Below, piece after piece: positions 5,413-56,490 of a stretch of 64,000 nt of DNA. A program made the translations under genes and the position numbers. Numbering within the stretch: the first letter of the stretch is position 1; the number at the start of each line of letters is the position of its first letter. This stretch comes from Guillardia theta CCMP2712 (lineage: Eukaryota; Protista; Cryptophyta), in assembly GCF_000315625.1 (NCBI RefSeq), contig NW_005434655.1, positions 884,259 through 948,258 of the forward strand. Reading direction: 5' to 3'. Below the pieces are notes generated by a model, which searched no databases, had not been told where the DNA came from, and saw only the letters and a list, made by a program, of their open reading frames with translations.

Positions 5413-5867
5413 TCTTGTCGTTTCGACCCTCCCTACGGCTCTCCGATTGCGTTCCTGAGCAAACTGGGCGAAAACACGATTCAGTATTCAAATGTTACCA
5501 GTTATTTTCAATGTTTCATAGAAGATTTAATGGACAAGAGGTCGCAAGGCATCAGGTGGGGTTCGACAGAGATAAGTCACTTTACTGAGCATGACCCCTT
5601 GTTCATTACCAGTAGTGATTCTGTACCATATTTTTATACTCAATATTTTCAATTCTGAAATCTGTACCAATGGTACAATTTATAGAATATTTATAATGCT
5701 CCATGGTCGGATACCCCCCTCTTCCCCTCACTTTACTTTGCTCCTGCTCACCACCCCTCCTCAGGGAACCCCTGTCCTCTTCGACCACCCGCTCTTTCCC
5801 CCTTGATCACCCCACCCTACTGGGTTCCCGGCATCCCATCGTATCTTTGCTCGGATCGCATCGCGCC

Positions 5868-8800
5868 ATGGGCTGGCCTTGTTCGGACTGTGCGGTAAAA
5901 CATGCTCTTCCTCCTCCCTGCTCCTCCTGCTCCCTCACGATCCTCCTCCCTCGCAATCCTCCTCTCTCTCATAGGCTGATTGCTCTCCTCCACTCCCTCC
6001 CCCACCACCTTCGCTTGCTTCTGCACCATCGACATTGACTGCGGCATTGCTCCTCCTCATCGTGCTTACTGAAAGAGAGCCCTCGCACCCTCCATGCAAT
6101 CTTGCTGAGGATAGTTCAGATCGTCGTCGAAGAAGGATCTTCCGACGGAGGATGCTGCGTGAGCTTCAAACATTCAATTTTGCTCCAATCTGATTGTTCT
6201 TTTCCCATGGCTGTGACGAACGAACCGAAGGCTGTAAGTTGACTCTTGTACACTTGACACCTGCCCGGACAGCTGACGATGTTCTTTGCTTCACTTACTG
6301 ATCTGGTTGGCATCAACAGTGGGTAAGTGATGACATTCCTTGGACGATTTTGAAAGTTTCTTTCTCCTTTGCGATCGACGGTTTTCGACGGAACTTCACA
6401 TCAGCGAGTGAGTGCGATGCGATTCACGAGATCGAACTTACGTTGTCTTTACCTCCTGGACATGCTATTCCTGTTGTTGCGACTATCAGACGGTATGTCT
6501 ACCCAACCTCATCGTTGTTCATGCACTGACAAGAGACTCCTACCTGTGCTCACCATTTATCTCTGTCGTCTTTGGGATCAGAGTGTGAGCTGTTCTCTTT
6601 ACGGTGTAGCTCATCTCTGACATCCGATCTCGTTTGCTCCTCGTCGTCCTCCATGATAGTCGGTAAGAATCGTCTTGCAAGCTGCGACTGACAGAGTTGA
6701 AATGATGTCACAATGTTTTTCGGTTTGATCTGACCTTTGTTCTCATGGTTTTGCAGCAAGTCAGAGTCTTTGTCTGTGTTAAGATAAGCAATTGACTCTT
6801 TGCTTTCTCTTCTCTGCATGTTGCACCTGCTGTTCTCACGGGAAAAGGCGGTAAGTCACGAAATAGTCTGCTTCCACTCCTTCCTCATCGCACCCTCAGT
6901 ACGTCTTCACGCCGGGAGAGGAGGGGAAATGCGACTTGTGCGGCAAGGAGGAGAAGGATCATCGCACAGAGCACAAGTTCTGTCCTGTGAGAGCCAATCT
7001 TTTTCATCATACGAACGATGCAAAGTTCTTGACTGACTCATTCTGATGCCGCAGCTCGTACGCGTCTTTGCTCTTGTTGTGTTCCTCTCTAACATGATTC
7101 TTCTCGGATGGACGCTACATTGGCCTTCATGTCATGTGCAGCGAGTAAGAAGCAGATTGATTCTGCTGAGACTGTGTTGACTCTGTTTGTTCTCCAACTC
7201 TGCGAAACATCTTCTGTGATTAGCGAGTGAGTTTGCAATGTTGTATCGTCTGTCCATTGAGTTTGATTTCCTTTCTTTCCGCACTCAATCAACGATTGCT
7301 GGTCATTAGCGGGTGTGCTGTCTTACATCTCCTTTGCTGTTCACTGACTCTATGACGACGACGACGATGACGATGACGATGACGACGACGACGACGATGA
7401 TAATGATGGCGATGGCGATGATGGCGATGATGATAAACTTGACTTCGACTTCATTGTACTTTGGACAACAGGCGGTGAGTCTTGTCTGGCTCAAAGCATG
7501 TCTCAACTGATGGATTGTTCTGTGCAGACGGTAAACCTTGTAAGACGATCTTCATGAGCGCTCACTTTTTTATCTGATGGTTGACGCAACTCGTGATGAT
7601 GTTGCAGCGAGTGAGTGACCCGATCGTGATCTCTACGACACGTGCAGCTAACTTCTTTGACTCTTTGCTTTCGTTTCACTTTCAATTTCATCGGAAATCT
7701 GAAGAGAGTGATATTGATTTCTTGCGATGTCTGCAAGCATGTCTGACGCTCCTTTTTCTCTACTGCGATGACGATTATGCGACGGGCAGCAAGTAATGAC
7801 TTCGATTGCTGTCTTTCCTGCAACCATGCAAAGGGTTCTGAACGAGTTTGCAGAATGTGATAATCTTCAACTTTCAAATCAATTCGCTAATCCATGTTGT
7901 CGGATGATTCATTCTTCGTCTCCGGGAAACAGCGAGTAAGATTATCCTGTGCTTGTACTTTGCAATGTCTGTGGTTGTTTCTGGTACTCGATTGACCTTG
8001 TTCGCAGCGTGTAAGATCCTTGCTCTATCCCTCTTGCCTCCTTTTTGCATTCTCTTCATTCTTGTAATCACTGTGCAATGATGTTCTTTTGGTTGTTTCC
8101 TCCGGCATAAAGACGGTAAGAGCTTTGCTATATTCTGATTTCACGATGTTAATGTTGTCTTTTTACACAACAACCTGCTACAATGCCAGTCGGTACGATC
8201 GCGATGCACTCTGTATCAACGGTCTCTGACGTTTGCATTTTTGAACTGCGATTTTCCTCCTGGTGCGGGACTGAGGAGAGTAGATGGTGAGTAAGAAATC
8301 ATTCTTCAAACTCTGTTGTTCCTCTAATTTTTCTTGTGGATGATGTCTCGTTGTTGACTTTCAACTCAGATGGTGAGTGGAGAGGGAGAGAGTCTACAAG
8401 ACAACTTGTGATTGATGCTTTTCCGTCACATCCATCGCTTGTCTTCCTTGTGGTCAGGCGGTGAGAAACTTTGAAGCACGAGAATCGTACTGAAAGTTTC
8501 GAAATTCTTTTTGAACTTCTCTTGCTGCAGGATGTAAGTACAAGTTCTTGATTTTATTCTTTGTGAAAGATCGTTTTTCCCACTTATAATCTGTCATACA
8601 ACAGACGGTACCATTATAAACTTGAGCTCTTCAGCGCATTTCTAGAGAATGACTTGTTTGTTTTCTTACTGTGTGATGGCTACATCATCGTACAAAGGCG
8701 GTGAGTGAATGTATGATGCGAGTGTTCTGTTGATATTTGTTGTAAAACGACAAGTGATGACAATGAAATAGGCGGTGAGTTCGACAGATTTCTGTCGTTT

Positions 8801-11800
8801 CCTCTTTGCGACTGAGATATGTACAAGTATGTCTTCCGAGCGGGAGATGACAACAAGTGCAAGGGGTGCGGAAAGCTGGAGGGTGAACATCACACCCAAT
8901 TCAAGTTCTGCCATGTAAGAAACATCACCTTCGTTCATGTCAGCGATTGACGTCGATGTTGGAATCTTGAATCTGAACTATCACATACAAACAGCGGGTG
9001 AGGAAACATCTTTTTGTGTTGTTTTTAACAATAATTGACTTCATGACTTTCGCTTTGATATCTATTTGGCTTCCGCTTGCAAATGTGACCTCTATGAAAC
9101 ATCAGGATGTAAGTTGTTATCATGCATTCATACTCTCGGTCGTCTGACTATTTTCTTGATTTTGTCCTGTATACAGACAGTGAGTTTGTGACCTTGCAAT
9201 CCTCTGATGACCTCCATTTGTTTTTCATACCTTCTTCTTCTGAATTCAATTTTTTCAGAGAGTAAGTGTCTTCCCTCAGTCCTGTTTTCTTCAAATCTTT
9301 CTCCTCTCCTCTCTCCTCCTCTCCTCTCCTCCCCTTTCTCCTCTCCTCTCCTCTCCTCTCCTCTCCTCGAACTCCCCTCGCTTCATCTCCGCCCTCCCCT
9401 TCTTGTCAAATTCAGTTTGACGTCTGACACAGTGTTGTATCTGTCACTGCGACAAGCTCACTGAGGGCAGGAGGAAGGCAACCATGTGTCCCTCCTGTCA
9501 AGCTCGTCTCCTCGTCATGCGCGACCTCGAGCAGCAGCTGGCCAGCAGGAGGAGTGGGCGCAACCTGTCACGGGACCTTCTCCTCATCCAGCAGAGCCGT
9601 TCGCATCCCACCGGCATCGGCCTGACCTTTCACCGACGTTTCGATCTCCTCCTCGCACACTACCTCTTCGGGCTGGAGGAGGAGGAGGAGGAGGAGGAGG
9701 AGGAAGGGAGGAGCCAAGTGGAGGCGTTGCTCTCAGCTGGAGAGCTCAGTTGCTGCTATGACCGCAGCAAGTGCATCCTTGACCTCTCCCTCGACACCTC
9801 CACCATGAAGTGGAACGTGTCAAGGGACCTCCGCCTCCGGCGACTCCCCAGCTGGGCCGCAAACTTGTCGGTCCCAGTCCGCGTGCTGGACGTGTCCGGG
9901 AACCCCTCACTCCTCAGCCTCCCCGTGGACGACCTTCAGAGCAAGAATCCTCTCCTCGAAGCGCTCATCTGCAACCGATGCCCCTCCCTCAGCCTGCCGC
10001 CCCCCGAGATCGCCGACCAGGGAGGAGAGGCTGCGCTCAAGTACCTGCAGCGGGTGCAGGAGGCGAGCATACAGAACAAGCACATGCACCTGATCCTCAT
10101 TGGCAATGGAGAGGCCGGCAAGACGAGCGTCCTTCACGCCCTCCAGTCCGCTGAGAGCAGAGCTGGGAAGATCGACGAGGACACGGGCCGTACCATAGGC
10201 ATCGACCTGAAGCACTGGAGTCTGGAGGAGGAGGAGGACGGGCTGACGTTTGACGTGATGGACTTCGGAGGGCAGGCGGTGTATACCAAGACAAACTTGT
10301 ACTTCCTAGTCCGACGGGCCCTCTACCTCCTCGTGTGGAACGTGAGGTCGCAGGCTCCCGGGCAGGGAGAGGGGGAGAGGATGAGAATGGGAGAAGAGCT
10401 GGAGACTAGCGTATCCCTGTGGCTGCGAGCGATCCAGGCGAGAGTGCCGGGAGCGAATATCCTGCTGGTGGCCACCCATGTGGACTTGGGGACGAGGGAG
10501 GAGGTGGAGGAGCAGTGCGAGGCGGTGAGGCGATGCGTGTTGGAGGAGAAGAGGCTGATGGCGAGGCACGAGGTCGAGACCATCCTCCCGCTCAACGTCA
10601 TCAACGAGGGGGAGAGCATGCGGGTCAGCTCGGTGACGGGGGAAGGGGTGGCGGAGCTGCGAGCCGCGATCTGCAGGGTGGCGAAAGGGCTGCTGTGGTG
10701 GAAGGAGAGGATTCCAAGGAGCTTCTTGCAGCTGAAGGAGGCGGTGACGAGGAGGGCGCAGGAGGATCGCTCCTCCATCGACCTGCGGGAGTACAGGGAG
10801 ATGATGGAGGGAGCAGAGCTGGACAGAGACGAGATGGTCGTTGCCACCACCTTCCTGCATGAGACGGGCGTGCTGAAGTACTTCGGCAAGGCGCTGAGGA
10901 GGACGATCGAGCAGGAGGAGGTGGAGAGGAGGGAGAGGTACTCGTTTGAGGACACGGTCTTCATCGATCCCTTCTGGATCGTCGAAGTCTTCAAGGGCAT
11001 CTTGCGGCACGAGTGGCAAGCTCTGATCGACTTCTTCCAGCAGGATCCCAGCAGGTCGAAGATGGTGAAGAGAATGCTTCACCTGGGCGTTATCCACGAG
11101 TTTCTCTTCCCCTTCCTCTGGCCCCAGCACCCGCACCAGCTGGGAGGAGACTTTTGGAAGCTCAGCACTGAGCCGAGCAGGCGCATAGACACAGAGAAAG
11201 CTGTCGCCCTCCTGCGTGGTTGCGATCTTGCCCACTTCCTCCCTACTCCCACTCATCTCCTGCACGACAAGCAGCTTGCAGACTCTTCTTCTTCCTCGTC
11301 CCCCCCCCCCTCCTCGTTGAGGAAGGAGCTTCTGTGCCCTGGCATCATCCCACACTTCGTGCGGGAGCACAGGTATCCCATCCAAGAAGCGACGAGCTTG
11401 CACCTGTGCATGCGGATCGTATACAGCTCGCTGCCTCCTGGCTTCGTTGACCGCCTCATCGTCAAGTGCGCTTCGAGGTACAAGGACGTCGACTGTAGCG
11501 CCTCCATGGCGGCGTTCTTCGGCTGGGGGAGAGTGCTCCTCTTGCGCTGGGAGGAGGAGAGGAGCAGCAGCTCGCTCGTCGCGCACGCATCAACGGAGCA
11601 GATGCTGAGCAATCTTGACAAGGACGTGACGTCACTGGAGGCGTTCTTTCCCGGGCTGAAGCGATTCAAACGAGAGGTCACAGGGAAGGAGGACGGCGAC
11701 TTTGAGCTGGTCCAGGTTGGAATCTTCTGCCAGGGTGAAGAGAGCAAGAGACTGGCGGACGAGCTTCGTTCTGAGCTTCTGCTGCGATATGCCAAAGAGC

Positions 11801-13844
11801 ACGGGACCCCCGCCAGGGTCGTTCCAACGTTCTCTTACACTCAGTCTTCCGCTTCCTCCGTCGCATTCTTCTCTGGTGAAGTCCTGGAGCTCAGCACACT
11901 CACGCGTGTGGTCAAGGATGCAAATGAGCAGGGGGAGGAGGAGAGGGAGGAGGAGGAGGAGGAGGGCAGGGAGGAGGAAGATTTCAGAGATTGTATCGTG
12001 CACATCTTGCTGATCTCCAAAGGATGTCTGAGGTCGAGCGATGGGGAGGAGTCTGCCTTCTTGAACTTGTGGAACAGCCTGACTGCGAAGAGAGCAGCGA
12101 TCGTTCCCGTTGTGCTGCAAGACTATGTCGAGGACATCCGAGACTTCACTCGGTGGTGGCCGGAGGGAGTGAGTGGGATGGAAAGATATCGAATCTTTCA
12201 TAGTTTCTCGCGCTCCGATGAGTCGATGAACAAGTTGTATCAGACTGTCATGAACAAGTTGGACCTGTGGAGAGGAAGGAGCACTGAAGAAACAATCTGC
12301 GTCAACGACCAGAACCGTCTCAAGTGCAAGGAGTGCTTCAGGTCGTTGGATGACATGTCGGAGATTGGGGAGTTCGAACTTCCTGACGACATCTTGGAGG
12401 TAGAAGGCGCAATGGAGACAGTGTTGAGCTGCAGCAAGCGCGGTCACTTGTCAACCCTCGCTGACGTCATTGACTTCAACAACTCCTGTGCTCCTTGTCC
12501 TCTGTGCGTCAAGCACAACCGGGTTCCCTTCTTCTTCAACAGGATGGAGTGTATCAGCAAGCTCTACGGCGACCTGACCGCCTGCGTGACATGCGGGGAG
12601 TGTGCAGGATCGATCAACGTTGTCGACATTACCCCTCCTCAAGTCTTTATCAGCTACCAGTGGGGCCACGGAGGCGTCACGCAGACGCTGGCACGGCAGG
12701 CAAAGCGCTTCATCGAGACGAGGACGGAGCTCTTGTGCTGGCTGGACGTGGAGGGAGGGATCCTGTGCGGGGAGGATCATATCATGAAGATGAAGCTCGG
12801 GGTAGAGCGATGCGACGTCTTCATTGCCTTTATGAGCGACAAGTACGTCAAGAGCGAGAACTGCAGGAGGGAGTTCGCGCAAGCCTGTGAAGCCAACAAG
12901 TTCATCATCCCAGTGATGGTGCCGATCCTCTTCGATGAGAGGAGTGACAGCGACGAGCTGAGAGAGTCAGAGTCGGGCTGGAAGGGGGAGACGGCGACTG
13001 ACGATTGGTGGAAGCGAATCTCAGCCATGGAAGGGACGCGAGAGGTGGAGGTCAGGTGGAGCCACCTGGCGTCATTCCAGAGGAGGGTAGAGCTGAGGGC
13101 GGAGAAGCAAGAGGAGGGAGGGGAGGTCAGGGCGGACGAGTCTTGCCTCGACCTGCTCCTCGCCATCCTCCAGTCTCGAATCTACCGAGGCAACTTCGTG
13201 AACCACGTGGTTGCCTGCTACCTGAACTCGAGGAGGAGCTGATGATTGTGCCAGGCCAAGAGCCCTCTCAAGTCGCTGCCAGGAGGGTCAGGCAAGAGTG
13301 TCCTAGCTAAGAAGCTGAGCGTACGAGTCGACGAGGACAGGAGGGAGAGGATGTTGACTAGGAAGAAGTCAAGGCACAAGAAGGTGGCGTTCGTCCCCGA
13401 CCCGACCATGTTCGAGTTCCAGAGGATCGACAAGCAAGGTGCGTTGATGTGTCTCTCCCTCTCCCTCTCCCTCTCCCTCTCCCTCTCCCTCTCCCTTCCC
13501 TGCTCTACCTCCCTTGCCACGTCCTGCTGATCCCCTACAAGCGCCTCCTCTGCCGCGTTCTGCTACTGCCCAGCTCCTCCTCCTCCCTCTCGCACCAGCT
13601 CATGGCGCTCCTCCTCTCCTCCTTCAGGGCAAGGGAGGCTCTCCTGCGATGTGCTCTTCGAGGGCCTCCTGCATCGCTGGGACCAGGACGAGCTCAGCAT
13701 GCTCTTTGACGCCATGGTGACGCTGCTGGCGCTCTCAACAGCTCGGTCCTCACTAGCTCTCAGGTCGTCAGCCGAGACGGTTCCGTGACCCTCGACGAGT
13801 TCCTGCGGGCTGTGCAGAAACTTCCGCAGACTCCCCGACTGTAG
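5868..13844 (+). CDS. Roco-family protein: microexon/Zn-finger N-terminus - LRR - Roc GTPase - COR - degenerate TIR-like - Cys zinc ribbons - TIR - EF-hand pair
   Basis: Main exon 9433-13206 is in frame with ORF 9484-13242. It carries LRR VLDVSGNPSL, P-loop GNGEAGKTS (~10102), DFGGQ, THVD, COR (FLHETGVL..VFIDPFWI) and TIR VFISYQWG..WLD..SENCRREF..IIPV (~12643-12915). 3' exons 13255-13438, 13628-13716 and 13764-13844 splice in frame (two of the introns are 48 and 47 nt) and encode EF-hand-like DKQGQGRLSCDVL and SRDGSVTLDEFL. The 5' exons 5868-5894 (MGWPCSDCA) and 6120-6158 are tentative. Confidence 0.85.
6900..6986 (+). other. 87-nt phase-0 exon encoding CCHC-type Zn-binding module 1 (YVFTPGEEGKCDLCGKEEKDHRTEHKFCP)
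   Basis: Bounded by CAG and GTGAGA; pattern C-x2-C-x6-H-x6-C; paralogous to 8828-8914. Confidence 0.85.
8828..8914 (+). other. 87-nt phase-0 exon encoding CCHC-type Zn-binding module 2 (YVFRAGDDNKCKGCGKLEGEHHTQFKFCH)
   Basis: Bounded by AAG and GTAAGA; same length and same YVF..G...KC..CGK.E..H....KFC pattern as 6900-6986. Confidence 0.85.
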
Positions 13845-32372: not shown

Positions 32373-35300
32373 TTATTTACACGCCATTTCAAAAAAGCCC
32401 TGACACCGTCGCCGGCACAGCCCACAAAGGTAGCCTGGCTGAGATCATTTGTAGTATCAGAGAGGACTGGGTGAGGATAATAGGAAGGGCCTGTCAAAGC
32501 TGCTCAATCATCTAAAGGTGCAGGCAAGGACAAGTTACTTGATCTCTTGGGGAGGGAGGGGACAAGTTCCCGCAGGAAGAACGTCTGTCGGTACAAACTC
32601 GGAAGACTGTAACAAGACCGAGTGTCATACCCATCTTTCCTCCCTCACAGACTCGTTGGAGACCTGATTGCTCATGCGGCAGCTCATCCAAGAGGTGAAG
32701 AGTTTGAGCTTCTCGGGTGAAAAGTTTGTCTCAGACAGGTAGAACTTGGGTCCGACCCACCTGATAGCAAGAGCATCGTGGTTTGAGACAGAAGAAACAA
32801 AGCATCCTCCGTGGGATGAAAGAAGGAAAAGCATGGAGAAAGCGGGAGGAGGGAATAAAACAAAGGAGATGAAGGAGAGGTAGAGGAAGGGACGATAGAG
32901 GACGAGGAGGTAGAGAAAGGGCAGGTAGAGGAAGGGCAGGTAGAGTACGGGGAGGTAGAGCAAGGGACGATAGAGGACGAGGAGGTAGAGAAAGGGCAGG
33001 TAGAGCGAGGGCAGGTAGAGGAAGGGCAGGTAGAGGAAGGGGGGGTAGAGGAAGGGACGATAGAGGACGAGGAGGTAGGGAAAGGGCAGGTAGAGTACGG
33101 GGAGGTAGAGCAAGGGGCGATAGAGTACGGGGAGGTAGAGTACGGGGAGGTAGAGGAAGGGACGATAGAGGACGAGGAGGTAGCGGAAAGGGAGGCAGAG
33201 GAAGGGGAGGTAGAGGAAGGGGCGATAGAGTACGGGGAGGCAGAGGAAGGGGAGGTAGAGGAAGGGGAGGTAGAGCAAGGGGCGATAGAGTACGGGGAGG
33301 CAGAGGAAGGGGAGGTAGAGGAAGGGGAGGCAGAGGAAGGGGAGGTAGAGCAAGGGGAGGCAGAGGAAGGGGAGGTAGAGCAAGGGGCGATAGAGTACGG
33401 GGAGGTAGAGGAAGGGGAGGCAGAGGAAGGGGAGGTAGAGGAAGGGGAGGCAGAGGAAGGGGAGGTAGAGCAAGGGGCGATAGAGTACGGGGAGGTAGAG
33501 GAAGAAGGGAACACATTCGTAGACGTCAAGGTGAAGCAGAGGCACGGAATCTTCACCAGTTACTTGAAGACTCAAAGTGAAACCAAACTCGCTCCCACAC
33601 CTGAGCACCACCATTATCATCTCCACATTACAAGGCTCTTCCGACATCTGAACCTGAAAAACTATCTTCCTGCCGATTCCGATGGACGCCAGTCGTTCGC
33701 ACTCAGCCCTCAACTCAGCTGGAAGGAACTCGTGCAGGCGATGCTGTTGCACAGAAGCATCGGTCTGGTCTGCTTCGCCCTCGTCCTCGTCATCGTCGAA
33801 AAAGTCGTGCTGACCTCCACCTAGCCCCCAGCTGCTCTTCGATCCTGGCATGACACAAGGAAAGTTGACCCCCAGGATGCTTCTTATCCTCAGCTGAGGG
33901 AATCTAAAGCGTTAAGTTTCAGTCTGAGAGAGAGAACGGGAGGAAGGAGCACGAGATGAGTGGAGCGGGAGCTGTAGTTTGATGTCATGGTGTTGTTTGG
34001 ATCAGCATCAACATGTAGTTTGATGTCATGGTGTTGTTAGGATCAGCATCAACATGTAGTTTGATGTCATGGTGTCGTCAGCATCTATAGTTGGGAGGAA
34101 AGCAAGGCTCGAACATGAGACCTTTGGAAGTAGTTGAGGAGGCTGATGCCGACGTCTCCCATCGTTCCATTCACCATCCCAGGCATCCAGTCCATGAGGT
34201 GTGCTTGCGGCATCCTCGACATGTCCATCATCACCATCGCATTCCAAATGTACCTGTCTTGTCTTGTCTCAGATGTCTATGGTAGGAGGAGATGGAGAAG
34301 GAGCAGGATGAGGAGAAGATGGAGATGGAGAAGGATGAGGAGAAGATGGAGGAGGAGAAGATGGAGGAGGAGGAGGAGGAGGAGATGGAGATGGATATGG
34401 AGGAGGAGATGGATATGGAGGAGCAGATGGAGGAGGAGGGGGAGAAAAGCTGCATTCGAACCTTGCAGTACACGGTGGACCCTCAGGCTTGTGATATCCA
34501 ACATGGAAAGGAGGAGTTGATGGAGAACAAGCGTGCGGTTTATCTTGAAGGATGCCGGCCATGTCATACCTGGAGGGGTTGAGAGAAAGCGGCGAAGCAA
34601 GTCTATTGAAACCCTCGGATGTAGTCGAGGACGGAGAAATGTCCTGTGAGGAAGAAGTCGTTGTCGAGGAGAAGTACGACCTCGTTCTTCCAGTACTTAA
34701 GCACAAGCTCTTTCATGATCCAATTCACAGTCTCGGCACATCGTATCGCTGCGGGAAGGATGCAGGGCAGTGCAAGGTCCATCAACATCTAACGTGAGAA
34801 CGAATGATCAGAGTCAGGTCTACCGCACCTGCATCGTAGGGCACATGATGTATGGCTCCTGTTCGAAACTCCAGGACGTGATGCTGTCTGCGGAGCCCCT
34901 CACACAGTGTGTGAATCTTGTTTCTGACGGATGCAGTTGGCCCGTCGTTAACCACGACATAAATGAAATCGTCCAAGAGGAAAGAGGTCAATGATTCATG
35001 CTATCACGAACAACATCGTCATCATCTTCATCTTCCAATCCCCCCCACTCTCTCCCCGTCTCTCTCTCCCTCGGGAGTCCGTCTCCATCCCTCTCTCTCG
35101 CTCTCTCTTGCTCGCTTGCTCGCTTGCTCGGTCTCGGTCTCGGTCTCAGTCTCGGTCTCGGTTTCGGTCTCGGTCTGACTCCCTTTTCCTCCCGCTTGCT
35201 TGTTCAATCGCTCACTGCCTCTCTCCTTCTCTCCCTCCCTCCCTCTCCCTCTCCCTCGCTCTCCCTCCTTCCCCCCGCCCCCCACTCTCACCTGCATTTT

Positions 35301-50986: not shown

Positions 50987-53090
50987 ATGGAGAAGGAGGA
51001 TGAACCGCGTTGGAAAACTCCGGAGGTCAATGATGGTAGAATCCTTGTAGCTCGCCGCAACCTTCGGATCCATCAGAGAAATCACAGCTGGGGAAGTGAG
51101 CAATACCTGCAGAAGGCCAGCAGTAACAAAGGATTTGATTTTAGTCAGCTCGACTTGGACCAGCTTGACGATGAAACTGAAGGAGATCAGCCTCGTGATG
51201 CTAAGACAAGCATCGGAGGATCGAGCGAGGAGGAGGAGGAGAGGCCGCCTTCAAGAAGATGGGAGCCTTCTTCTTCGCTGCACTGCATCTGCATGGTCTC
51301 AGACTTCTTCTACCCTGACGCGGGAGGAGTTGAGAACCACATGTACATGCTCAGCCAGTGCCTCCTTCAGCTCGGCCACAAAGTGATAGTTGTGACACGA
51401 GCCAGAGGTAACAGGCAGGGGGTCAGGTGGCTCACCAACGGGCTAAAGGTCTACTATCTGCCTCTCATGCCCATGCCCGACGTCTTCTCCTCTGGACGAG
51501 TGACCTTGCCGACACTGTTCAGCTCGTGGCCCATCTTTCGCTTCATCTGCATACGAGAGCGAGTGACCATCGTCCATGGACACCAGGCGTTCAGCATCAT
51601 CTGCCATGAGAGTTTGATGCATGCAGGAACAATGGGGCTAAAAGTGATCTTCACTGATCATTCTCTCTTCGGCTTCTCTGACCCTTCAGCTATTCACATG
51701 AACAAGGTCCTCAACTTCACTTTATCTTGCATCAACCACGTTATCTGCGTGTCGCACACAAGCAAGGAAAACACAGTTCTGCGAGCTAGCATCGAGCCAT
51801 CGCACGTTTCCGTCATCCCAAATGCGGTAGACACATCAGTGTTCACTCCGAACCCCACGGCGAGGAAGAGCAACTGCATTACCATCGTTTGCATAACACG
51901 GCTGGTCTACCGCAAAGGAGTCGACCTGATGGTGGAGATAATTCCTTCCATCTGCCAGCAGTTCGAGCATGTCAACTTTGTCATCGGTAAGGGTGCTCGT
52001 GTCTGCTCTTTTGGTGAGTGGTGACGGCAGGTGGCGACGGGCCGATGAGGGTGGCGCTAGAACAAATGCGGGAGAACCATCAGCTACAGGACCGGGTAGA
52101 AATGCTGGGACACGTGCGGCACACCGACGTGCGGAATGTGCTTGTGCGAGGACACATTTACCTCAACTGCTCGCTGACTGAAGCATTCTGCATCGCAATC
52201 CTTGAAGCTGCCAGCTGCGGGCTGCTGGTTGTGAGCACGAGAGTGGGAGGAGTGCCAGAAGTAATGCCCTCACACATGATCAAGTATGCTTCACCTGACG
52301 CAAACTCCCTCATCGAGGTAATGCAGCAGATAATCGTGATGCAGATGATGACGATGATGATATGGAGGAGGAGGAGGAGGAGTAGCACGAGGAAAGAATG
52401 CCTTGAAAAAAAAGTTATTTGAGATATGCATTTTTGACATTTCTTGTAGGTACTCAAGGTTGCGATCAGCAAGGTGAAGGGCTACAATCACAAAATTTAA
52501 TCTCACCCACGGCTTTGATAGGATGTGAAGGAGGTTGTGCCATCCGAGTTTCACGCCAAGTGATTGTTGTGATCGCATGAAATTTCTTTCATAACCTTTT
52601 GTCAGCATCAAGAAGATGTATTCGTGGCATGATGTAGCCAAAAGGACTTGTAAAGTCTACGACCGGGTGGTGCAAGACAAGCCGAAGCCATTGCTGGAGA
52701 GGCTCAAGAGGTGCCATTCCCGAGGTGATCTTCGTATTTCGTTCATTTCGTTTCTGGTCACCAACGCCCCCCCCCTTCGCTTTTGTCTCCTTTCCTCTGC
52801 ATTACCTGGCCTCATCTGCTCCTTCAGCACTTCATTGCTTTTGCGTTTGCTTTCACATCCTTGTATCCTTCTCTCTGGCTACCGCAAAGAGATCATTTTC
52901 GGTTCCGTACTCAATGGTATCTCAGGTCCATTTTTCGGCATCTTGATTGCTTTTCTCGTTGCTGTTGATTTCATAGTTTGGCAAATTATGTGAGGTTTAT
53001 AGATGGTTTGCGCCTAACAACTCAATTCGTTTCAAGTTGTTGGATATACCCTGAGGAAGATATTGAGATCGCTGTGGACTACCCCTATCA
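50987..53090 (+). CDS. PIGA: Phosphatidylinositol N-acetylglucosaminyltransferase subunit A (GPI anchor biosynthesis), multi-exon
   Basis: [97 protein letters not shown]. Both termini are approximate. Confidence 0.93.
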
Positions 53091-54332: not shown

Positions 54333-56490
54333 TCATGGCCTCGTGCCCTCTGAGCGGTTTCCACCAAGAACGCCTTCCAGCTGCTTCGGGTCTCTTGCGC
54401 TTAACCCGTTGCTAAGCTGGAGAGGAGCTGAACCGGAGTCGTCGAGTCCATAAGCTGCCTGCATGGCCAGGCTCGAAGTCATGACCTCAGCCTGCATCAC
54501 AGCCATGGTCCCTCCACCGCCCGTTCCTGAGAACGCCTCCATCTCCTGGTCATCTTCTCCGACGTCTTCGACCACTTCAACTGGTTCACGGATGGAGGAG
54601 ACGTCTGCGTCCTCTTTTGGCACTACTCCTATCAGTCGCCGATGTAGAGTGATCTCGATTTCCCCCCTATATGGTCCTCGAAGAAGTCCCTGTAACAATG
54701 CCGACGTCAGCAGTTTCATCTCACACTCACCCTGCCTAACTTTCTTCTCATAGCTCTACTGATTTCCTTCAACTTCCGCAGTCTTCAATTCCTTCTCCCT
54801 ACTCGCGATTCTTTTCTACTCAAGAGATCAGAACTAGATAAACTACCCGAACAAAGCCTCTACTTGCTACATTTTTCTCCGCTGTTCCTCCTCCCTCTCC
54901 TCATCTTACCAGCGTGACTGGGGTTCCTGGTTCTCCTGCACATCGTCGCAGCACATGTTCAGGCAGCCAAACAGGGAAGTTATCCACACTCGTGATAACA
55001 TCACCAACTTCCACCCCTCCCACTTGAGCCGGCATTCCAACCAACAGCCCCATCACTACCACCTCCCCCCTGTGCGTGACGTTCAGCCGCAGCCCTATGC
55101 CCACCAGAGAAACAAGCTCAGGCCCTCCTTCATACTGGTTTGCACTTTCTTCTAACTTGCCAGGACGACCAACGATGCGTGTGATGGTTTTCTTAGGAGG
55201 GTCCAACCCCATCTGCTCAGCATCTGCCCTTGATATTCTCACTGGTTGCATGCTCCAAGTGTTCTTGCGCACCCTTCGGACGTATCGCTCAACATCTGTA
55301 GGGTCGGGATCCGGAATTCTTCCACGATCGGTCCAAGTGCCCAGAAACAACGGGAGACCGTCACCGTAATCTACCTCTCTGTCAGCCTCAATAATCTCTC
55401 CTCCCCACGCATCATGCCACGGGCGTCCGTGTATCACACTATCGTAAATTTCCATGGCAGCCAAGTGAGCTTCGTTTCCTGCAACGAAGGCACTTTTGTT
55501 GTCTTTGATCAAACATGCTTGCACTGTCATTTTTGCTTCCTCGTCGACCATGAGACCTCCTATCTTACAACCTTGAATCGTACAACCGTTGACTTCCACT
55601 ACGCTGGCATGGCATGCACTGATTCCGATATATTCAGTATTTTCTACCAGACAATCTTCAATGCAGACTTGTGACAGTTGCCAGCATAAGACACCCCACC
55701 CCGACAGACTGGAGCTATCAGTCAACCCTCCCAGGGTGCATCGTCTCATGTGCGCGTCTGGGCCCGGAAAATGATCAACAATTTTACCACCTCCTCGGTA
55801 ACTGTCATCAAAGACATACTTCCCTCCACAGCACCAGACGGCCTTGCTGAATTCTCCCGTGCACCGTATCTCGCACTCTTCAACTAACCAAGCACCACCT
55901 TCCAAAAAAAGACAAAAATCGTGTACAGTCGGTTCCTGATACCAAATTCTCATCAGTTGTAAAGTCCCCCCGCCTTCTTCAGGCTTCCATGTTTCTATGT
56001 CGACTGGCTGCTGCAGCACCACCTTTCCTTTCAACAAGGGCTTTTCGCTGCCCGCCAGATCTCCTTGCAACAACAATTTCTTGTTGATCTCAATCTCCGG
56101 TCTGAAGTGCTTGGGTTCATTGCCGTGAAATAGTCCCCCTTTGATTAAGTGCTCTCCAATCTGATGTTCACCTTCTCGTAAGGTAATTACCTGAAACAAT
56201 GTCATTTCTTCACTCAAACTCCAACAACTTACATCTGGACTTCCAGCTGCTTGAAATGCTTCATTCAGTGTTGGAAAGTGATCCGGAACCAGAACCCCAA
56301 TGCTTTTCTTCGGATGAAAGGATGCTGAACTTCCAGTACCCTCAAACGAATTCCCCAAAGAATTAACTGGTCCGGTCGAGCCCAAGCTGAAATCATAAAG
56401 GTCGCTCACCACAGCTAAAAGAAGGAAGATGGGAAGATGCCATCCGGAAGGCAGTCTTCGCCTTCTTGCAAACTTATGCTGCATTTGCAT
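54333..56490 (-). CDS. Signal-peptide protein with right-handed beta-helix (pectin-lyase-like) domain and C-terminal PDZ domain
   Basis: VLVPDHFPTLNEAF..ITLREGEH, repeated IEDCLVEN/VNGCTIQG/VQACLIKD, PDZ VGIGLRL..VMGLLVGMPA..VEVGDVITSVD..GEPGTPVTL. A second PDZ-like tail LLRGPYRGEIEITL is in ORF 54333-54719. Confidence 0.7.

Follow-up and report, generated by a model that had tools for sequence, protein, structure and literature searches.

A candidate array of 33 one-codon exons in the N-terminal region of a predicted Roco-COR-TIR gene of Guillardia theta

The stretch analysed here (the window) comprises 64,000 nucleotides (nt) from the cryptophyte Guillardia theta CCMP2712 (contig NW_005434655.1, positions 884,259 to 948,258), and near its start lies a predicted Roco-COR-TIR gene, for which we obtained a stop-free model of 38 exons encoding 1382 amino acids (aa; Table 1). 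Besides a single long main exon, two short exons at the start and two exons that each encode a putative zinc finger, the model contains 33 exons of 3 nt, each a single codon, arranged in three runs. Window positions 27357-48748 are 100% identical to scaffold JH992983.1 (GCA_000315625.1) of this species. An earlier note, made from the sequence alone, had described these triplets as exons encoding the N-terminus of the protein; the array is indeed in frame with the main exon, but the true start lies further upstream, in exons 1 and 2, which had been missed.

The order of domains typical of Roco proteins, Roc followed by COR, was found in the main exon, with a COR-A match at E 2.1e-7 (below the Pfam cut-off) and a faint match to COR-B. 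The P-loop, DxxG and THxD motifs of a predicted GTPase are all present. The N-terminal part of the main exon encodes helices and a short part resembling leucine-rich repeats (LRR), for which only weak LRR matches were obtained. The second finger exon is 66% identical to the first at the DNA level, and 14 of the 29 encoded residues are the same. No match to the finger was found in Pfam, PDB or Atlas, and its identification as a RanBP2-type finger was dropped because the spacing does not fit.

Table 1. Features of the predicted Roco-COR-TIR gene, in window coordinates.
Feature	Position (strand)	Description	Remarks
Exon 1	5868..5894 (+)	Start codon, MGWPCSDCA with CxxC, phase 0	Counterpart with MxxCxxC in four further G. 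theta genes
Exon 2	6120..6158 (+)	39 nt, IVVEEGSSDGGCC, phase 0	L001-L003 and the kinase gene of L002 have 39-nt Cys-ending counterparts
3-nt exon array	6231-9261 (+)	33 units	~890,489-893,519 on scaffold JH992983.1 (GCA_000315625.1)
Run 1	6231..6850 (+)	Eight 3-nt exons, AWRTSSQA	
Putative zinc finger 1 exon	6900..6986 (+)	87 nt, phase 0	C-x2-C-x6-H-x6-C, no Pfam family
Run 2	7055..8774 (+)	21 consecutive 3-nt exons, Arg/Ala/Thr-rich	
GAC/GAT microsatellite	7354-7434	Inside one run 2 intron	
Putative zinc finger 2 exon	8828..8914 (+)	87 nt, phase 0	
Run 3	8995..9261 (+)	Four 3-nt exons, RDTR	
Main exon	9433..13242 (+)	1269 stop-free codons	CCxC, CxxC, helical region, short LRR-like stretch, Roc, COR, C-terminal TIR
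Roc GTPase domain	10090..10485 (+)	Pfam PF08477, E 3.7e-12	P-loop GNGEAGKTS intact
TIR_2 domain	12643..12924 (+)	Pfam PF13676, E 3.3e-13	Glu in CxxE motif

All 33 units were found where the earlier note had placed them, and a recount gave the same acceptors (23 CAG, five TAG and five AAG). The donor was GTRAG in 23/33 units and a weaker GT donor in the remaining ten, with a median intron length of 82 nt within the array. Markov simulations of order 1 to 3 produced the motif AG-N3-GTRAG on average 0.25-0.77 times (maximum 5) in positions 6150-9300, compared to the 23 matches observed, in agreement with the earlier estimate of less than one by chance. At each of the other spacings from 0 to 30 nt, the same positions held just 0-2 matches to AG-Nx-GTRAG. 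The earlier note had held that an equally high density of the motif in ordinary or shuffled sequence would speak against the array, but only background levels were seen, including on both strands of the rest of the window. None of the triplets is a stop codon and all are phase 0, the earlier translation of the array being correct. The array sequence was reproduced, with only single-base gaps, by three DNA runs of one sample (probably the source of the assembly), and DNA contigs cover most of it. That the array is a chance pattern or an artefact of assembly is scarcely credible, and this idea is already refuted by the motif excess, by the DNA contigs and by the presence of this architecture in a second organism and at four further G. 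theta loci.

Each 3-nt exon is preceded by an intron of its own, with a branch-like motif ~40-70 nt from the AG and a pyrimidine-rich tail lacking AG, and is mostly followed by a strong donor. The stretch free of AG upstream of the 3-nt exons had a median length of 51 nt, compared to 20 nt upstream of long exons (p=0.001) and 17 nt in 2000 base shuffles, which never exceeded 34 nt. A branch-like TGAC was present at -70 to -38 in 14 of the 33 array introns (3.3 expected), whereas in a rough control outside the array the branch-like motif lay ~15 nt (14.5) from the AG. Codon usage was also distinctive when the one-codon exons of the window were pooled with those of the four other genes described below. 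Among these 91 exons there were no stops, no CAG or AAG codons, which could act as rival acceptors (7.8 expected), and no GTN codons, which could act as rival donors (6.4 expected), while a single codon ended in C (28.7 expected). For the window array alone, C-ending codons were rare (1/28, compared to 477/991; p=6e-7) and NAG codons absent (p=0.004), and the depletion of CAG/AAG and of GTN was not significant. The dinucleotide CG occurred in 19/33 codons of the window array and in 34 of the 91 across the five genes (7.9 expected), and ten of the 33 window exons encode Arg.

The absence of stops from all 91 exons (p ~0.01-0.03) implies that the triplets are translated, which argues against the idea that they are stepping stones for the recursive removal of one long intron and never appear in mRNA. 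Nor were the zero-length AG-GT junctions of recursive splice sites seen, spacing 0 giving no match where spacing 3 gave 23. Taken together with the choice of one codon exon per run, considered below, we regard this explanation as highly improbable. Indirect tests, among them intron architecture and codon usage, strongly support the view that the triplets serve as spliced exons, of one codon each, in a Roco/TIR gene.

The closest relatives of the main-exon protein are proteins of G. theta and Hanusia phi. Scanning of relatives, as the earlier note had advised, revealed four further G. theta genes with this layout: three Roco-TIR paralogue loci whose upstream parts contain 13, 21 and 11 unannotated exons of 3 nt, and a kinase gene adjoining one of them with a further 13. 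A CxxC exon is followed in each by a Cys exon and then by codon runs, 2-13 codons long (2-21 with the window included), interleaved with 0-2 finger exons. Across the family the finger exons are 81-87 nt and phase 0, with the pattern C-x2-C-x6-H-x5/6-C, and in the Roco genes CCxC opens the main exon. Public gene models miss the 3-nt exons, those of the paralogues starting at a Met equivalent to the window ATG at 9484. To judge from these layouts, the N-terminal cassette is portable between effector types. The kinase gene (L002:14399-18782, on G. theta JH993185.1) stands beside a Roco-TIR paralogue, its two finger exons are identical at the protein level and a PARP-domain gene lies next downstream; a 26-nt tandem repeat occupies L002:12893-13725, between the two cassette genes. 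The donor of exon 1 is GC (GCAAGG) at L002:5157-5183, L002:14399-14425 and L003:6496-6522, and GT in the window and in L001.

Introns of the sister arrays look alike (~105 nt, up to 92% identical), and in units with flanks of 80-89% identity the codons share just 48% of their letters. The introns of the window array are shorter and their similarity is at shuffle level (best pair score 2.0, compared to 2.0 in shuffles); a tandem-repeat search of the array region returned microsatellites only. Thus, the earlier statement that the array is not a tandem repeat is correct for the window copy but not for the sister arrays, which are repeats, so that the window array probably began as a tandem repeat as well. 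The window protein is 43-46% identical to all of its relatives, and its long branch falls outside the G. theta trio and the Hanusia trio alike, at a node that was not resolved. Since the splice signals, codon bias and reading frame were kept while the similarity of the introns was lost, we infer that this is an old array under purifying selection.

Outside G. theta, H. phi has finger exons similar to those of the window, and in two eukaryotic metagenome contigs (L015 and L017) exons of 3 nt stand between exons of the types described above. Sequences with 80-90% identity to these exons occur on further metagenome contigs, where they lack introns and are fused at the exon borders. A contig of 6 kb carries the module twice without introns (L010:2887-4200), once on each strand; one of the copies has stops, as expected for retrocopies. 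The linkers of the intron-free homologues are 1-16 codons long, and in a post hoc test on a few related loci their codons ended in C in 3/49 cases (compared to 228/532) and were never CAG or AAG (0/56), with no depletion of GTN. As these linkers carry the codon bias of the arrays, they suggest that multi-codon runs really are assembled by splicing in a relative. The choice of one codon exon per run would leave one residue between the last Cys-x of a finger and the next finger, which may give a regular C-x2-aromatic spacing, and a one-residue linker does occur on contig L016. However, this first idea was dropped because the homologue linkers, which run to as many as 16 consecutive biased codons, do not fit it. 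The L016 gene (L016:871-2241), 400 nt from a TTTAGGG telomere-type repeat, has a weak HET-domain match (E 0.0013) followed by an intron and two fused fingers with this linker; in the related sequences P0015 and P0023-P0027 the aromatic-rich linkers differ, being 1-14 residues long. P0024 and P0029 have a near-identical finger, which in P0029 runs into intron-like sequence and in P0024 into an 11-residue linker and another finger, and are possibly a parent and its processed copy.

We consider it probable that the locus is a functional 38-exon Roco-COR-TIR gene in which the one-codon exons are mostly all included, and whose variable Cys-rich segment has been edited over evolution. The ordinary spliceosome would remove the ~80-nt introns successively by intron definition. 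A branch point ~40-70 nt from the AG would separate U2 from U1 at the following donor, and a pyrimidine-rich tail free of AG would ensure that the correct AG is met first; the steric constraints that microexons place on U1 and U2 have been discussed (PMC10250204), and introns flanking microexons are removed consecutively (PMC8831610). Most or all codons would then be included in most transcripts, and diversity would arise chiefly in the DNA, over evolutionary time, through intron-codon cassettes and whole finger exons being duplicated, lost or swapped without frameshift. With codons changing faster than their flanks, the length and sequence of the loop would shift residue by residue. By analogy with brown algal ROCO proteins, the one-codon segment is probably the recognition loop of an immune-type receptor. 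The window copy would be an old, divergent member in which the repeats have decayed and the splice signals have been kept.

Several observations weigh against this reading. The role as a recognition loop rests on the brown algal analogy; ten donors depart from GTRAG, AAG is the acceptor in five units and the AG-free zone is shorter than 30 nt in five units. The retrocopy-like linkers represent a small number of related loci and no parent array was matched to any of them, the Roco protein of the window has no protein database record, and the AlphaFold model of an intron-free homologue of the Cys-rich region was unusable (pLDDT, predicted local distance difference test, 36). None of the RNA-type runs searched for the locus (window 5600-10400) contained it, and sampling of 6% of the raw RNA run X5 (reads of at most 60 nt) gave 18 scattered reads and no exon joint; runs X1-X3 were DNA and so were excluded as RNA evidence. 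A pattern for both finger exons had no match in the JGI contigs, where a Roco N-terminal profile found two irrelevant LRR matches only, with no match to this profile among viral contigs. The exon status claimed in the earlier note is supported indirectly, by intron architecture, codon bias, conservation and the intron-free copies. Among the JGI sequences, P0058 (1411-nt contig) is a fragment of a Roco protein of the G. theta type; its aromatic-rich leader (residues 1-30) is joined in frame to CCVC and may be the spliced codon run of a paralogue.

The RNA results, together with the loss of intron similarity, the microsatellite expanded in one intron and the start of the public paralogue models at the equivalent Met, are also what would be seen if the copy were a silent or decaying relic, either unexpressed or with its main exon alone translated from the ATG at 9484. 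However, RNA sampling was shallow, and although the introns have fallen to background similarity, all 33 AG/GT pairs, the AG-free zones and the codon bias are intact, features that neutral decay would have erased. Both finger exons, both upstream exons and the 1269-codon frame are intact too. We therefore judge a relic to be improbable.

The functional gene could instead act as a diversifier at the level of splicing, with codon exons skipped combinatorially to give a repertoire of linker lengths and sequences per cell population, as the earlier note had supposed with its up to 2^33 theoretical combinations. Every skip would be in frame, all exons being phase 0, several units have weak splice sites, and alternative splicing varies both brown algal ROCO genes (PMC11378527) and schistosome micro-exon genes (MEGs; PMC10526429). 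Moreover, linker length varies (1, 2, 3, 6 or 11 residues) among intron-free homologues whose fingers are nearly identical. However, different parent genes explain these variable linkers equally well, because genomic run lengths already span 2 to 21, and no skipped transcript was present among the 18 reads of the locus. Skipping as the main source of diversity thus seems unlikely. We offer as a similarly tentative proposal that cryptophyte-type algae have a dedicated system for diversifying immune-type receptors by single residues, in which portable one-codon arrays would combine recombination of cassettes between genes with regulated skipping within the cell and so yield a repertoire of recognition loops.

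Exons of 3 nt, symmetric micro-exon runs and exon-modular ROCO genes are each known singly. In schistosome MEGs, 10-20 very short exons follow one another, most with a length divisible by three; they preserve the frame and are missed by annotation (PMC10526429). The window array, with at least ten symmetric micro-exons in a row (a run of 21, all phase 0), resembles these genes. MEG exons are 6-81 bp according to the text of that paper (3-81 in its abstract) and mostly 15 bp, with introns of 0.1-5 kb, and the proteins are secreted and alternatively spliced (PMC10526429). By contrast, all 33 exons here are 3 nt, with introns of ~80 nt, and the predicted protein of 1382 aa, with its Roc, COR and TIR domains and CxxC-exon start, is judged from size and domains to be unlike the small secreted MEG proteins. 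The brown algal LRR-ROCO genes are likewise ROCO candidate immune receptors with N-terminal symmetric shuffled exons and fast-changing residues, but there each shuffled exon is a 72-bp phase-2 LRR (PMC3341825, PMC11378527). Here a unit consists of a single codon or of a finger of 81-87 nt (87 nt in the window), in phase 0 and in a Cys-rich region of a protein ending in TIR, and the main exon contains the LRR-like stretch. In the G. theta paralogue cassettes the codons outpace their flanks, which may reflect diversifying change of the brown algal kind. Differing from MEGs in size and protein type and from brown algal genes in lacking LRR exons, the array would work like both and be a member of neither.

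Isolated microexons of 1-3 nt in animals, plants and dinoflagellates are spliced, with sequential removal of the flanking introns (PMC4674806, PMC8831610, PMC12584245); these are single or paired, whereas the window has a run of 21 and a gene family built on one-codon exons. Human exons with distant branch points and long AG exclusion zones are scattered (PMC1431707), while in the window a similarly distant branch point, with no AG between it and the acceptor, precedes most array exons. Families of look-alike introns also result from introner-like elements and from tandem duplications that create introns (PMC4457414, PMC4974935). The sister arrays are like these, but the repeat stands at every codon boundary of one segment, and the window introns show no mutual similarity. 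No paper describing arrays of one-codon exons was found in a literature search, most subscription papers being outside its coverage, which agrees with the earlier note in knowing no description of 21 consecutive exons of this kind.

Elsewhere in the window are a 408-aa open reading frame on an internally repeated stretch (32625-33851, minus strand; self-matches of ~85%, no Pfam match), a PIG-A-like glycosyltransferase (50987-52024, plus strand) and a beta-helix plus PDZ protein (54901-56490, minus strand).

A run of 21 consecutive 3-nt exons is near the physical limit of splicing. As such exons would be unrecognisable by exon definition, the array lends itself naturally to testing intron definition, the order of splicing and the placement of branch points. 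The architecture has outlived the repeats that appear to have built it, which argues for long-term selection, and it may represent an evolutionary device by which a protein segment on the candidate immune receptors of this unicellular alga would be altered by single residues without frameshift.

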